Part shown: one piece after another, positions 36,051-41,335 of the stretch
Layout of the letters: every line of letters begins with the position of its first letter
How positions within the stretch are numbered: the stretch's first letter is position 1
NCBI GenBank assembly: GCA_000320545.1
Contig: ADNK01000415.1
Coordinates: 1 to 64,000 of the forward strand
From: Bigelowiella natans CCMP2755
Taxonomy: Eukaryota; Protista; Cercozoa
DNA length: 64,000 nt
Direction of reading: 5' to 3'
The notes under the pieces: model-generated
Told to the model about the DNA's origin: nothing
What the model saw: only the letters and a program-made list of their open reading frames with translations
Database searches by the model: none
Made by a program: the position numbers and the translations under genes

Positions 36051-36110
36051 CTCGGAGCTTTGCGGTAGCTACTATTATCAAAAATCAACAGAACAACGAA
36101 GATTCACCCC

Positions 36111-38584
36111 ATGTCTATGCCAACGAAAGCACACTGGTCTTTGGAAGCCTGGAGGAGCCTGCCTGCTAGGCACCAGCCAGTCTACAAGGACAAGAAGGAA
36201 TTGGAGCGTGTGCGCTCAACTTTGGAGGGACTTCCTGGTCTCGTTTCCTTTGCTGAAGTCTCGGCGCTACGCTCGAAGTTGGAGATGGTGTATGAAGGCA
36301 AATGCTTCTACCTTCAAGGGGGTCATTGTGCTGAGACCTTTAACCACTGCAACAAGGAGTCCATTCAGCCCATGCTCGATGTGATGAACATTATGAAGAA
36401 GGTGAGAATTAGATGGAAAGATAAGATTAAAAGAAATTATCACCTGATTGTCGTTCATATTTTCAGGTCATCTCCGAGTATACGGACATGCCAGTTGTGA
36501 CTCTTGGACGCATGGCTGGACAATATGCAAAGCCTCGTTCCAGCCCAACTGAGACTGTGAAAGGGGTTGTGATGGATTCATACAAGGGGGATATCATCAA
36601 CTGTAATCAAGCTGATGCCAAGGGACGGATTCCAGATCCAAACCGTATGATCCAAGGATACTTCCGCTCGGCAGCTTGCTTGAATTTCATTCGCAGTTCT
36701 ACTCATGTGAACAACCGCGTAAGCGGGGACATGCTTCAACGAGTGCGAATGATCTTGGGTTCAGGTGCAGTTCGATCTTGCTTTCATCCTGGTATGGTTG
36801 GTTTTGGGGATGATCTTAAGTTTAAGCATCTGTACAATGAGATGCCAAAGATTGAGAAAGACCAATCAAAGCTCGCTCCCGGTGAGAACTTTTTCATTTC
36901 CCATGAAGGACTACTTCTCGATTACGAGGACAGTCTTACTCGATGTGAGACAAAATCTGATGATGACGATGCTGCGAAGACTTGGTACAATGCCTCTACT
37001 CATATGCTGTGGATTGGTCACCGTACCCGTGGTCTTGAAGATGCTCATGTTGAATATTTCCGTGGACTCTACAACCCGGTCGGTGTGAAGGTTGGCCCAG
37101 GCACCACCCCAGAGGTGCTTGTGAAGTTGATCAACAGACTCAATCCGAAAAATGAAGCTGGGAAGATCGTCTTAATTACTCGTTTTGGTGCTGAAAAAGT
37201 TCTGAAAGATCTCCCAAGTCTGGTTCAAGCCGTAAAGGATGCTGGATTAAAAGTTATTTGGACCTGTGACCCTATGCATGGGAACACTTACAAAACCAAC
37301 ACTGGTTTCAAAACCCGTGATTTTAACAATATTGTAAAGGAAATTATAAACACCGTCGGTATCCATAAAAAAATTGGAACCCGTCTTAATGGTCTTCACC
37401 TAGAAATGTGCGGAGAAGACGTCACTGAATGCGTTGGTGGCCCTGAGAAGTTAGGAGAAACTGACCTTTCACGCTGCTTCACCTCCGCTTGTGATCCACG
37501 TCTGAACTTCGAACAAAGCGTCGCAGTTGCGTTTGCTGTTGGAAATGCTTTAAGAGCACCTGAAGCCAAAAAAACTATGTCACTTCCACAAGTCCCGTCT
37601 GTACAGTATGGTTCCGTCCCCGGTATGACGAAGCCAGTCTCAAGACTTATCTTTGGAACTCTGTTCCTGTCAAAAGTCTCTCAACCATTTAAACTTCTGG
37701 ATTCTATCTGGAGCAAAGGTGTCAATGCTTTTGACACTGCAGCAATCTACGGTGAACCTGAAGGCAGTTGCGAGAAGATACTCGGTGACTGGATCAAATC
37801 TCGCAATGTAAATAAAGAACAGCTTGTTCTCATCACTAAAGGTGGTTGCAGTGGCGCGGAGTCTAAATGGGCTGCTCGGACGAGCAAAGCTCAAATTTTG
37901 AAGGACATCGAAGGCTCTTTGGGACGTCTTGGTGTAGACACCATTGACATCTATCTCCTTCACCGTGATGACCCTTCAATTACTGTGCCAGAAATCGTTG
38001 ATACCATGAACGAACTCATTAAAAAAAAGAAAATCCTGAGTTGGGGTGTTTCTAACTGGAGTCTTGACCGCTTCAAAGCAGCTGTCGACTATGCTAAATC
38101 CAAAGATCTGGTTGGCCCCGTTGTAGATTCTCCACAAGCAAGTCTTGCGAAACCTGCGGGTCCTGTATGGCCTGGCACAACCCACATGAATGCGGAACGG
38201 GAGAAGTACTACACTACCAAAAAAGATGATGTATCTGTTTTTGCATGGGAAGCCCTCGCCAAAGGTTTCATGACTGGGAAGTGGAACCAGAATGACCTTG
38301 ACTCTGTTGAAGACAAACCATATCGCGAGAAGACACTAATTAAGGCTTATTGTACTGGCAGCAACTTTAAGCGTCGCCAGCGCGCCGAATTTCTTGCAAA
38401 GGAGAAGGGTGTCCCACTTCACTGTATCGCCCTTGCATACCTCTTGAATCTCCAGTGTGAGATGTTTGTACTTGTTGGTACCAGCAAACTTAATCATTTC
38501 AATTCCAACGTGGGTATGTTTGACGTCACTCTTTCAACTAAAGAATGCAAATGGTTGAACGAAGGAGGCGAACTTCAAGCATAA
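36111..38584 (+). CDS. Class II DAHP synthase fused to a C-terminal aldo-keto reductase; 2 exons (36111-36401, 36467-38584), about 802 aa, no targeting leader
   Basis: DAHP synthase II motifs WSLEAWR..QPVY, LQGGHCAETF, GRMAGQYAKPRS, SHEGLLLDYEDSLTR, WIGHRTR, NPVGVKVGP, CDPMHGNT, HLEMCGEDVTEC, CDPRLN. AKR from about 37600: FDTAAIYG, LVLITKGG, IDIYLLHRDD, GVSNWS. Continuous ORF across the junction; intron gtgaga..ttcag is in phase 0. Confidence 0.92.
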
Positions 38585-38649
38585 AAAACCAAGATTTGGA
38601 TTCGATATGCATGAAGATGGGTTTTCTAAATTATTTCGATTTGTAGAAC

Positions 38650-39200
38650 ATTGATACAGCATCCTGTGTCCATTCTGCATTATCTGCAGCTTACCGCCAT
38701 GCTAGCATGCCCACGGAGCGAAGCATCATGATCCACGTGCACGTATCTAGATATTTCATGCATCGCACAAGCTAGATAATTCATCATGTCTAGCTAGCTA
38801 GATGTACGTAGCAGCGCGCTAGCTAGCTGCTAGCGCGTGCAATATCACAGCTAGCAGACAGCGGCAAATGACTACTATCAGATGCAAAGCTAGATTTAGC
38901 TATAGGACATGTAGCGGCTGCACATCTAGCTAGACATGTTCTAGATGTTCCTTGCATCACATCATGTTGCATTGTTGGCGCACTAACACAACAATGCGAG
39001 TGCTGCATGAGTGTCGCGGGGCTGCCTAGCTGGTCATAGACTGTCTATATATGAGACGGATGTAATGAAGAATTAAATTTTTTCAATGGACACCTGATGT
39101 AGCTGTCTATATATAGCTGCTCGTCTCGACGACGACGCGACTTCAGATATGTGCTAGCTAGCTAGCTTATTGCATGCTAATTTACTGACATTAACAATGT
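38650..39200. other. CTAG/TGCA/CATG-rich zone between convergent DAHP synthase-AKR and GCS2 3' ends
   Basis: tctagctagctagatg, gctagctagctgctagc and tctagctagacatgttctaga words. Confidence 0.75.
39054..39106. repeat. Dispersed repeat fragment, copy 2 (related to 31175-31233)
   Basis: Same core words as copy 1, same orientation. Confidence 0.6.
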
Positions 39201-39222: not shown

Positions 39223-40470
39223 TCAAAAGCCACAGTTTATCTCAGAATGTGAAATAAATCCCTGAAGTCCATCAGATTTTGCGATCTCTACTGCCTCCTG
39301 TGCAGGATTTTTCCTCTTTTGCATACGACTGTATGTTAAATGCATAGATGCAATGAATGGGTCACTCCAGCTGATCAGATTGAACAACTATTAGTAACTC
39401 ACTGAAAGAGCGGATCTAAAAGATGCTCCTCGTTTAGTCCCCGGGACTCGAGGCCCTTTCTTAGAGATAGAATTTTCATTTTTTTTGCTCGTTGTTTTGG
39501 AAACCACACATACATCACATCTACGCATGATTGTCATCATTCATGAACCTGCATTCTTTGAGAATGCTCTCAACAAAATCAGCGTTAAGAAACGAAGCAT
39601 CCTCGCGCAGCATACCGAGCCCCTACAAAGACGAATAACCAATAGCCGTTATATTCCTATTTGGAAAGTACGATATTGTATGTAGTACCACATTCTCTGC
39701 ATCCATTGTGGTGTTCTGGAAATCTCCCCACACCTGCAATGCACACACACACACACAAATGCATCGCGGTCATCCACACGATGCATTGACTACTAGCACC
39801 CAGGGATCTAAAAATTCATTCATGATACCCCTAATCGAATGAATGCTTTCTCCGATTACGCAGAGGGTAACTACCTCATCGAATGTCATGTTTTCTCCCC
39901 CCCCCTCCTCCTGTATTAGGCTCCAGATTCCCTCTGAGTTCTCCACCTAGTATCACCGGTGGTAGACGAGTTGATCGTTAATTGTCGGCACACATTTTGA
40001 AGGAGAATTGATTTTGCAAAGTGTGGGGGTAGGGGGGGGGGGGGCTGTGTGACTTTCTATGCCTCACAGAAGGGAAAGCATTCAAGAAAAGCTGATGCTT
40101 CCAGAAGCTACCAGATGCATACTTTTCTTCTTGCGACATCAACATATCCAAGTAAATCACCATCATCATAAACGTCAAAAGCTAACGAGAAATGCTGTCA
40201 TCAACGTGGTCATCCTGCCTCGCAAAGAGGTTGCTGCACGACTGCTGCATTCATTCAGGTACGATTACAAACACCAGCATTTACTAAGATCGTGTATTGT
40301 TATGGGTAGTAAGAATCGGTTGACCATTCCAAGGTGAAGTGCAGCAGCGCTCATGTGTTCAGACCTTCGTTCGCATATAACGGAAATATTTGTCATTCAA
40401 GATACAAACGTTAGAGTTTATCTTTTTTTCCTCACACACACACATATGTATCAATATATATATATATCGT

Positions 40471-40507
<37 letters not shown>

Positions 40508-40527
40508 CATATATATCACATACACAA

Positions 40528-40585
<58 letters not shown>

Positions 40586-41335
40586 TCTAATCATCGACAT
40601 TAGATTATCAAGACTAATTCGATGATGTTTGATTGCTGATGCTGCTTCTTACCAGGGCTGCTGGCATGCTGCCCGACATTCCACCGTCCCTTGCTTGTTG
40701 CGTGGACGTGCCGAATGCCAAACGTAGTGATCATGGAGAAGGAAGCAATCGTACTCCTGATGGATGTGTGTAAAGCAGGTAGCAAGCAGCAGTAGAGAAA
40801 GAAAGAGGGGGCACAAGAAGAACATCACAGAATGCCTGACAGCGATGGTGATGAGAAGGATGATGACTTTCCCTTAATTTCGAATCTTCTCCATACGACT
40901 TAAAAAAGTGCATTGGAAGCCACATTGATGGCAGGTTTCTCTGCTGCTACGTCACGTGTGTTAGCAAGGAGTAGCAGTGGTGGTAGTAGTAGTATCATGG
41001 CAAGATGGTCAATAATGATGATTGCTGTGCTGGTAGTACCGATCACATGTAAATGGGTTGATTGCTGGTACTACAAATGCTATCATTGCTACTACTAACA
41101 TTTTTACTATTACATTGTCAAGCCGGGTGGTGCTATTCGATCCGTGCTTTGTCTGAGGAGCATATCACCAATCCCCGTACAATCAAACATCACCACACAT
41201 GCTGTGCTGTTATCCTCTTCCAATATGTTGCCCCCTCGATTCTTAACCCCTTCCTTCAATATGCATGATGCAGGCTGCTGGCTTGCATTACCCATTAAAT
41301 AAGTACTTAACAATCATATTAAAAATATAAATATA

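Follow-up and report, generated by a model that had tools for sequence, protein, structure and literature searches.

The window, 64,000 nucleotides of the genome of the marine alga Bigelowiella natans CCMP2755 (contig ADNK01000415.1), carries at 36111-38584 on the plus strand a two-exon gene encoding an 802-residue protein, in which a predicted type II DAHP synthase (DAHPS) is joined to a predicted aldo-keto reductase (AKR). The corresponding JGI model is Bigna1/85850, in its EST-extended form (EP00466_Bigelowiella_natans). The features of the gene are as follows.

36092..36110, plus strand: 5′ UTR, minimum extent (alignment start of transcript contigs L020 and L021)
36111..36401, plus strand: coding part of exon 1, residues 1-97, N-terminal part of the type II DAHP synthase (Pfam, translation)
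36402..36466, plus strand: intron, 65 nt, GT..AG (sequence; missing from transcripts L020 and L021)
36467..37558, plus strand: exon 2, DAHP synthase part, residues 98-461 (Pfam PF01474, TIGR01358, PDB 5UXM, Foldseek)
37559..37600, plus strand: interdomain linker, approximately residues 462-475, of variable length among orthologues (AF2 pLDDT, orthologue comparison)
37601..38581, plus strand: AKR domain, residues 476-802 (Pfam PF00248, PDB matches, tetrad, Foldseek)
38582..38584, plus strand: stop codon (open reading frame)
38585..38750, plus strand: 3′ UTR, minimum extent (transcript L020 aligned through 38750)

Two independent transcript contigs, L020 and L021, match the window over 36092-36403 and 36465-38750; the intron is spliced out as modelled, and each contig contains one unbroken 802-codon open reading frame. 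The splice junction (MKK before the intron, VISEYTD after it) is identical to that in the database protein P0001. The fusion gene is real and expressed, beyond serious doubt. A first-pass annotation of the sequence had described a single exon running from one domain into the other; this holds for the domain junction, which lies within exon 2 in one open frame from 36467 to 38584, but not for the gene, which is interrupted further upstream by the intron. The motifs named in that annotation were all found in this same frame on the plus strand (CDPRLN at 37490, FDTAAIYG at 37730, ITKGG at 37832, LLHRDD at 37955). Its view that the fusion is not a gene-model artefact was also borne out by Pfam matches to both domains on one exon, with which the transcripts agree, and since L020 and L021 are spliced with a single 802-codon frame, the cDNA carries no stop between the domains. 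These transcripts rule out a chimera of two neighboring genes created by assembly or gene modelling, a reading in whose favor no point was found: the genomic frame is continuous across the domain junction, the same frame is present in both transcript assemblies, and three other chlorarachniophyte data sets, as well as uninterrupted metagenomic reading frames, contain orthologous fusions. The chance of such an artefact is negligible.

Profile searches were performed on the exons separately and full-length analyses on P0001 and P0248, database entries that depart from the window's product at two residues. The DAHP_synth_2 profile PF01474 (cut-off 27 bits) matched exon 1 over positions 1-90 (E 5.2e-23, 81.7 bits) and exon 2 over positions 97-437 of 438 (E 2.4e-126, 422.2 bits), a full-length match above the curated cut-off for class II DAHP synthases. 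TIGR01358 matched residues 9-461 of full-length P0001 over profile positions 1-441 of 443 with 473.1 bits, which is below the equivalog cut-off of 614.7 and marks the domain as a divergent member, so that DAHPS function was assigned from individual residues rather than from the equivalog rule. All four metal ligands are present, namely Cys73 in the motif GGHCAE on exon 1 (36327-36329; the usual type II motif is GGDCAE), His368 (37277), Glu410 (37403), and Asp440 (37493, within CDPRLN), as are the PEP/E4P-binding residues Lys119-Ser122 of KPRS (36530), Arg283 and Arg285 of RTR, Lys305, and Arg336. These active-site residues aligned with PDB 5UXM (E 5.5e-88); their roles follow the numbering of M. 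tuberculosis AroG, with which the metal-ligand and substrate-binding positions of the fusion almost coincide. The domain is 35-40% identical to P. aeruginosa PA2843 (5UXM), M. tuberculosis AroG (2B7O, 3NV8), and the C. glutamicum enzyme (5HUC), and Foldseek gave a target-normalised TM of ~0.85 against type II DAHP synthase structures. By sequence, the first 460 residues constitute a type II DAHP synthase that is divergent but has its full set of catalytic residues.

Like the type II enzymes of primary metabolism, the fusion has the long form with the alpha2a/2b insert, but unlike any solved or characterised type II DAHPS it adds a C-terminal AKR domain of 330 residues. An earlier hint at a secondary pathway (PhzC) lost ground in this comparison, as the domain resembles the long primary type (5UXM, M. 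tuberculosis AroG) and not the short PhzC-linked 6BMC. Substrate specificity could nevertheless differ from the canonical one, given the score below the equivalog cut-off and the long branch on which the domain falls in the DAHPS tree.

The Aldo_ket_red profile PF00248 (cut-off 24 bits) matched exon 2 over positions 19-286 of 291 (E 7.7e-51, 173.3 bits), and a (beta/alpha)8 barrel, as expected for the AKR superfamily, was indicated by both AF2 and Foldseek (target-normalised TM 0.76-0.81 against AKR crystal structures). The PDB matches were Kv-beta2, DepB, IolS, and YghZ, at E ~1e-19 and 22-25% identity with the tetrad aligned. That tetrad consists of Asp520 (37733), Tyr525 (37748), Lys555 (37838), and His596 (37961), which align with the catalytic positions of Kv-beta2, and the cofactor-type motifs are WGVSNW, SPQ, and LVGTSKLNHFNSN, a pattern that can also be written GVSNW, Q, G-x-S...N. 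By these features, the last 330 residues form a complete AKR of the NADP(H) type, its tetrad intact. The fold, the tetrad, the GVSNW and Q motifs, and a length of ~330 residues are shared with AKR6 (Kv-beta), AKR11 (IolS), AKR14 (YghZ), DepB, and AKRtyl-type enzymes; in contrast to these long-chain families, the domain reaches no curated family threshold, belongs to a protist-type clade of its own, and is covalently bound to a DAHPS. The Kv-beta/AKR6 model TIGR01293 scored 77.9 bits on the domain and 74.4 on the full-length protein (cut-off 365.4), and the AKR14 model NF007388 for YghZ-type L-glyceraldehyde-3-phosphate reductases scored 75.7 and 72.2 bits (cut-off 448). Since the Kv-beta score is far below its cut-off and no better than that for YghZ or IolS, no specific kinship to Kv-beta is indicated. 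ESM Atlas look-ups of P0001 and of P0240, an AKR fusion of another type described below, returned generic AKR clusters (score 0.78-0.79). The AF2 model has a mean pLDDT of 91.7 with both barrels confident (AKR residues 476-800) and the linker alone weak, falling below 50 at residues 463-466; this linker is ~12-15 residues long in B. natans and 10-33 in orthologues (12 in B. natans by the same measure).

Orthologous fusions were found in Lotharella globosa (72% identity), Amorphochlora amoebiformis (68%), P0004 (68%), and P0005/P0247 (54%), the last being one unbroken reading frame on a 26-kb eukaryotic metagenome contig near VPS13 and histone genes. In all orthologues a discrete AKR domain is covalently joined to the DAHPS, and the two are about equally conserved (56-71% identity for the AKR, 58-76% for the DAHPS). 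Pfam detected only PF01474 and PF00248 in the fusion, with no chorismate mutase or ACT/ferredoxin-like domain among the matches. Further DAHPS-II::AKR proteins are P0369 (Tara Oceans) and P0371, whose AKR domains group with stand-alone choanoflagellate AKRs (support 97) and whose DAHPS domains join the chlorarachniophyte ones solely via long branches (91, with a long-branch warning). All four tetrad residues are retained in six of six orthologous fusions, in all eight class II fusions examined, and in 28 of 28 near stand-alone relatives.

The AKR tree separates the protist-type clade from bacterial-type AKRs with an SH-aLRT support of 100, and every fused AKR falls inside it. Within class II fusions the AKR is C-terminal, both in chlorarachniophytes and in the second, metagenomic group near the choanoflagellate AKRs. 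A new finding, made by sequence comparison, is that the same clade is also fused in reverse order, N-terminal to class I-alpha DAHP synthases, in more than ten distinct proteins (P0240, P0242, P0251-P0258, P0264). Two class I fusions carry an additional domain: P0263, from a Hematodinium TSA, is EF-hand-AKR-DAHPS-I, and P0260 has a ketopantoate-reductase-like domain in between (AKR-ApbA/KPR-like-DAHPS-I). The tetrad Tyr, Lys, or His is lost in P0251, P0255, P0256, P0257, P0263, and P0264, with every DAHPS-I catalytic motif kept, and we count these apparently dead domains in favor of a non-catalytic role for the AKR. Of the three functions that the first-pass annotation had suggested (DAHP reduction, supply of an unusual aldose phosphate, NADP(H) sensing), they lend indirect support to sensing or regulation alone. 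A dinoflagellate origin for the main clade of AKR::class I fusions was considered and set aside, as the dinoflagellate spliced leader was looked for on four transcript contigs and not found. Stand-alone members of the clade exist in choanoflagellates, Diplonema, and a pelagophyte, and no aromatic-metabolism gene was found among the genomic neighbors of the Diplonema (P0143) and pelagophyte (P0153) copies. The bacterial-type cousins adjoin sugar or cyclitol oxidoreductases and not aro genes; the genes around P0150 form a sugar cluster with fucose-isomerase-like and GFO/IDH/MocA members, those around P0170 are uninformative, and no aro gene was found in either neighborhood. More distant cousins occur fused to, or next to, sugar or inositol dehydrogenases of the GFO/IDH/MocA type or a xylose-isomerase-like TIM barrel.

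In the B. natans genome, the fusion is the sole copy of the DAHPS-linked AKR clade. A single arom-type locus is present, on C237, with DHQS, EPSPS, and SDH matches on one strand within 9 kb. The idea that the AKR stands in for an absent shikimate dehydrogenase was considered and discarded, as a Shikimate_dh_N match lies inside this locus. The absence of an N-terminal leader, proposed from the sequence at the outset, is upheld by a DAHPS profile match starting at residue 9, an in-frame stop located 15 codons ahead of the ATG, transcripts that start ~20 nt before it, and orthologues that are equally short. Given this absence and the single arom-type gene, the fusion protein is likely a cytosolic shikimate entry enzyme. 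It need not be the main entry, since B. natans also has two more class II genes and a tandem double class I gene for DAHPS. Fused aromatic-pathway enzymes are a protist habit, as in the Amoebophrya AroG-tryptophan synthase and arom-AroC proteins (PMC6482013). Those fusions and the pentafunctional arom protein join known consecutive or same-pathway steps, whereas the partner in B. natans is an AKR. We know of no AKR-catalysed step in the shikimate or aromatic amino acid pathways.

Given that the same AKR clade occurs with both DAHPS classes, in either order, and sometimes with a dead active site, we read this pattern, on sequence grounds, as the mark of two domains that function together. Functional coupling of the AKR to the DAHPS is probable. 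The reading that we prefer, a bienzyme in which the AKR would serve a catalytic and a regulatory function as in DAH7PS-chorismate mutase proteins, has in our estimate an even chance of being correct, and the specific mechanism of such dual coupling is put forward more tentatively still. The fusion protein would act in the cytosol and feed the single arom-type multifunctional shikimate gene, with the AKR as a coupled partner module rather than a passenger. The AKR would bind NADP(H) and a sugar-like carbonyl compound, which it probably still reduces, and its ligand or redox state would be transmitted to the DAHPS barrel, possibly also in reverse, by interdomain allostery of the kind seen in DAH7PS-chorismate mutase bienzymes, such that shikimate-pathway flux would track NADPH or carbonyl status. 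Regulatory domains are commonly recruited by DAHPS enzymes (PMC8408635), and in DAH7PS-chorismate mutase systems, fused or complexed, the allostery is reciprocal and the partner is both catalytic and an allosteric handle (PMC8408635, PMC7762937). These systems are fused in Prevotella nigrescens, Porphyromonas gingivalis, Geobacillus, and Bacillus and non-covalent in M. tuberculosis and C. glutamicum; as in the AKR fusions, a DAHPS barrel is combined with a second enzyme domain that may be N- or C-terminal. They differ in that chorismate mutase is small and helical, while the AKR is a (beta/alpha)8 barrel whose ligand is not known to take part in the pathway, and the allosteric communication in DAHPS-AKR proteins is suggested by sequence patterns and analogy. 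Several observations count against coupling: the intact tetrad of every class II fusion would suit an ordinary enzyme no less than a sensor, an AF2 pTM of 0.70 leaves a fixed interface between the two domains conjectural, stand-alone members of the clade exist, and the bacterial-type cousins lie beside sugar or cyclitol oxidoreductases.

The conserved tetrad and cofactor motifs of all class II fusions and near stand-alone relatives would also be expected of a metabolic branch enzyme, in which the AKR performs a committed NADPH-dependent carbonyl reduction at the pathway entry and the fusion channels or co-doses the two activities. Candidate substrates are the 2-keto group of DAHP (giving 3-deoxyheptonate phosphate), E4P, and two carbocyclic ketones, 3-dehydroquinate (giving quinate) and 3-dehydroshikimate (giving shikimate). 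The divergence of the DAHPS domain fits this reading, as do the ketopantoate-reductase-like domain of one class I fusion, which belongs to a family of 2-keto-acid reductases, and the GFO/IDH/MocA and xylose-isomerase-like partners of distant cousins, which point to sugar- or cyclitol-like carbonyls. A committed step could not be lost, however, yet several class I fusions are dead in the tetrad; the shikimate dehydrogenase domain is kept in the B. natans arom-type gene, so that no canonical step is missing, and no known product or pathway needs such a reduction. We consider this reading unlikely. More doubtful is its farther-reaching form, in which the DAHPS-linked AKR clade would catalyse a new NADPH-dependent step at the shikimate entrance (reduction of DAHP or 3-dehydroquinate) and so open a new C7/cyclitol branch, into which marine protists would channel the DAHPS product by way of the fusion; were it true, this branch would have been elaborated further in the tri-domain AKR-ketopantoate-reductase-like-DAHPS protein.

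Alternatively, the AKR may be a general detoxifying or housekeeping carbonyl reductase whose link to the DAHPS ensures equal expression and nothing more. AKRs are promiscuous, some stand-alone clade members lack aromatic-pathway neighbors, and the short linker varies among orthologues and is predicted to be disordered, all of which would suit mere co-expression. Such a fusion is nonetheless quite unlikely, as two DAHPS families acquired an AKR of this clade in at least two independent events and in opposite order, the chlorarachniophyte genera have retained the fusion with an AKR as well conserved as the DAHPS, and co-expression leaves unexplained why the AKR fold is kept beside an intact DAHPS after its active site has decayed. 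The dead domains of some class I fusions, the presence of Kv-beta2 among the best profile and PDB matches, and the recruiting habit of DAHPS enzymes would instead suit an AKR whose role is purely regulatory also in B. natans, where it would turn over no substrate but bind NADP(H) and sense redox state, much as Kv-beta subunits do on potassium channels. With a tetrad strictly conserved in all class II fusions examined and a Kv-beta score that is no better than those for YghZ or IolS, this pseudoenzyme is very unlikely.

DAHP synthase is the flux-controlling gateway to the aromatic amino acids and a textbook case of allostery by recruited domains such as ACT and chorismate mutase. To our knowledge, an AKR partner is not among the regulatory solutions described for it. 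The statement of the first-pass annotation that no DAHPS-AKR fusion has been characterised agrees with the searchable full-text literature, which does not cover subscription journals and in which none was found. The architecture itself is not unique: public databases already contain it under automatically assigned names, and it recurs in several lineages of protists and with DAHPS of both classes. Fusions of DAHPS-II with AKR were found in Lotharella, Amorphochlora, and several metagenomic eukaryotes. If the AKR is catalytic on a pathway carbonyl, a new branch would be revealed; if, as in the coupled bienzyme that we favor, it senses NADP(H) or a carbonyl metabolite, aromatic biosynthesis would be linked to redox or pentose-phosphate status in marine protists. 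In either case, the AKR is a partner that recurs with two unrelated DAHPS classes.

Two exons make up the gene that joins a class II DAHP synthase (DAHPS) to a C-terminal aldo-keto reductase (AKR) in an 802-residue protein:

36111-36401, + strand, exon 1, an open stretch of 97 codons with the 3′ boundary AAG/GTGAGA
36402-36466, + strand, intron of 65 nt, 3′ end TTTTCAG
36467-38584, + strand, exon 2, 705 codons and a stop, in frame with exon 1

The one point to correct in the first-pass annotation is that the whole gene spans two exons. In domain searches run exon by exon, exon 1 matched positions 1-90 of the Pfam profile DAHP_synth_2, and exon 2 matched positions 97-437 of 438 of that profile and then Aldo_ket_red 19-286 of 291, placing the junction within one exon as proposed; every motif named in the first-pass annotation was also found in place. 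Full-length analyses were run on the database proteins P0001 (the fusion of the chlorarachniophyte Bigelowiella natans, whose cluster includes EP00466_Bigelowiella_natans, JGI model Bigna1/85850, prefix estExt) and P0248, in which the exon junction reads ...NIMKK/VISEYTD... and two residues differ from the product of the window. Two independent transcript contigs, L020 (JGI sample 3300017170, 2587 nt) and L021 (Logan SRR6233159, 2503 nt), matched window positions 36092-36403 and 36465-38750 at 99.3-100% identity with the intron absent, and both carry a single 802-codon ORF with no stop between the domains, in keeping with the uninterrupted fusion first annotated. The fusion is present on mRNA, and an artefactual origin was excluded. 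The window and these transcripts differ at 8-16 positions per 2.2 kb (99.3% identity), with two amino-acid changes (Glu/Lys, Gln/Glu), indicating allelic or strain variation. Low-complexity intergenic DNA of an ordinary kind, a long TA-rich stretch resembling a microsatellite, lies 3′ of the gene (40353-40625, + strand) and shows up among the ORFs as YIYIYI...

All four metal ligands of the DAHPS half, Cys73 (GGHCAE), His368 (DPMHGN), Glu410 (HLE), and Asp440 (CDPRLN), were found, and the substrate-binding KPRS, RTR, Lys305, and Arg336 were all in place, at positions close to the numbering of M. tuberculosis AroG. The closest solved structures were the long primary-metabolism type II enzymes of P. 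aeruginosa (5UXM, E 5.5e-88), M. tuberculosis (AroG), and C. glutamicum, while the short PhzC-linked 6BMC was further away. Judged by sequence, this half is a divergent class II DAHPS, assigned to the family by Pfam and catalytic residues although its TIGR01358 score (473 bits) is below the equivalog cut-off of 614.7. In a quick-search tree with an unresolved backbone, long branches lead to the fused DAHPS domains. In the AKR half, the catalytic tetrad (Asp520, Tyr525, Lys555, and His596) aligned to the catalytic positions of Kv-beta2 and the usual cofactor motifs were present. No curated AKR subfamily profile reached threshold, and the half is classified from its residues as an AKR superfamily member outside every named AKR family. 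An AlphaFold2 model of P0001 from a 96-row alignment gave a mean pLDDT of 91.7 and a pTM of 0.70, and was weak only at the termini, one loop, and linker residues 463-466. Foldseek matched the first half to type II DAH7PS structures (target-normalised TM ~0.85) and the second to AKR structures (0.76-0.81), and returned no chain spanning both. Both halves look functional by prediction.

Full-length fusion orthologues were found in Lotharella globosa (72% identity), Amorphochlora amoebiformis (68%), the JGI transcript P0004 (68%), and a more distant eukaryote (P0005/P0247, 54%), where P0247 is an unbroken ORF on a 26-kb metagenome contig with VPS13 and histone genes as neighbours. Among these orthologues, the linker is 10 to 33 residues long and conservation of the AKR half (56-71% identity) matches that of the DAHPS half (58-76%); both domains are under strong purifying selection. 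An AKR-domain search of 1.8 billion representatives added two proteins, P0369 (881 aa), from Tara Oceans contigs, and P0371 (879 aa), both of the same architecture and each one ORF with a longer linker. The B. natans polypeptide carries two complete domains, both predicted to be catalytic. Public databases already contain such sequences under automatically assigned names, such as the L. globosa UniRef entry 'Phospho-2-dehydro-3-deoxyheptonate aldolase', and no described or characterised DAHPS-AKR fusion was found in the full-text literature outside subscription journals, which agrees with the first-pass annotation.

The proteins closest to the AKR domain (40-48% identity) form a protist-type clade with members from acanthoecid choanoflagellates (Stephanoeca, Diaphanoeca, Savillea), Diplonema, a Hemistasia-labelled transcript, and a pelagophyte, split from bacterial-type AKRs at 100 SH-aLRT in quick-search trees whose backbone is unresolved. 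More than ten distinct proteins of this clade (P0240, P0242, P0251-P0258, and P0264) carry the AKR on the N-terminal side of a class I-alpha (AroG-like) DAHPS. Class I and class II DAHPS belong to separate families, and the two domains stand in the opposite order in the class I fusions, indicating that AKR and DAHPS were joined at least twice independently and that the fusion is recurrent. The dinoflagellate spliced leader was found on none of four class I fusion transcripts. P0263 (803 aa), from TSA record GEMP01017566, whose prefix GEMP01 denotes a Hematodinium transcriptome (PMC6642578), carries an EF-hand pair (49-109) ahead of an AKR that is degenerate (170-442) and a class I DAHPS that is intact (482-781); the EF-hands could be a calcium input on the DAHPS of this plastid-less parasitic dinoflagellate. 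P0260 (1051 aa, Logan, four cluster members) carries an AKR (26-327), an ApbA/ketopantoate-reductase-like domain (351-681), and a class I DAHPS (736-1037), placing two NADPH-type reductase domains on a single DAHPS. More distant bacterial-type AKR cousins (34-38% identity) are repeatedly fused to or adjoin GFO/IDH/MocA oxidoreductases (P0413, P0415, P0441, P0448, P0464, P0477, P0480, P0490, P0491, P0493, P0390, and locus L012:6828-8969); in one cousin (P0421) the fusion partner is a xylose-isomerase-like TIM barrel, and in another (P0457) a GMC oxidoreductase. AKR catalytic residues were lost in six class I fusions, in which all DAHPS-I catalytic motifs examined were intact:

P0251, Tyr to Asp and Lys to Asn
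P0255, Lys to Gln and His to Gln
P0256, His to Gln
P0257, Lys to Ser and His to Gln
P0263 and P0264, more extensive tetrad loss

AKR domains predicted to be dead are thus retained beside apparently live DAHPS, and an AKR kept after decay of its active site must render some other service to its partner.

DAHP synthases acquire regulation through recruited domains, and in DAH7PS-chorismate mutase, fused or complexed, the partner serves as enzyme and allosteric handle at once, with two-way communication (PMC8408635, PMC7762937). By analogy, we propose the same logic here: the fusion would work like known DAHPS with fused partner domains, with AKR as a new kind of partner. Given two complete domains, purifying selection, independent recurrence, and the retention of dead AKRs, we infer that the AKR serves as a partner module coupled to DAHPS, and some functional link between the two is probable. 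A specific mechanism, which we hold only tentatively, is that AKR occupancy modulates DAHPS, with catalysis kept in chlorarachniophytes. The AKR would bind NADP(H) and a sugar-like carbonyl compound, which the chlorarachniophyte enzyme would still reduce, and its occupancy would tie pathway entry to redox or carbonyl status.

The chief alternative is a true branch reaction, in which the AKR would act on DAHP, E4P, 3-dehydroquinate, or 3-dehydroshikimate. The intact tetrad, the additional 2-keto-acid-reductase-like domain of P0260, and the association of distant AKR cousins with dehydrogenases of sugars or inositol (GFO/IDH/MocA) and with a xylose-isomerase-like barrel favour this reading. Against such a reaction as a committed step stand the dead tetrads found among the class I fusions and the normal shikimate dehydrogenase that the genome encodes. 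A neutral fusion kept for co-expression is unlikely, because the joining recurred independently.

The AKR clade has one copy only in the B. natans genome, which encodes these other shikimate-pathway loci:

G000:C247:18150-19934, - strand, multi-exon class II DAHPS paralogue without AKR, with the usual GGDCAE
G000:C2666:16704-18717, - strand, multi-exon class II DAHPS paralogue without AKR
G000:C3598:2027-6653, + strand, tandem double class I DAHPS gene (loci L008-L011)
G000:C237:4135-12728, + strand, arom-type locus (L005, L024-L027) with DHQ synthase, EPSP synthase, and shikimate dehydrogenase N-domain matches in order in <9 kb

Tandem class I DAHPS proteins (700-820 aa, two PF00793 stretches) also occur in Partenskyella glossopodia (P0259), Amorphochlora amoebiformis (P0262), and a metagenome (P0261). 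The DAHPS profile begins at residue 9 of the fusion, an in-frame stop lies 15 codons 5′ of the ATG, the transcripts begin ~20 nt 5′ of it, and the orthologues share the start position, leaving no room for a bipartite plastid leader, whose absence had been noted at first pass. The simplest reading is that the fusion would be a cytosolic entry enzyme supplying the arom protein. Two chorismate synthase genes are present, and further DHQ-synthase-like loci on C567 (463-aa open frame) and C3696 may be sugar-phosphate cyclases.
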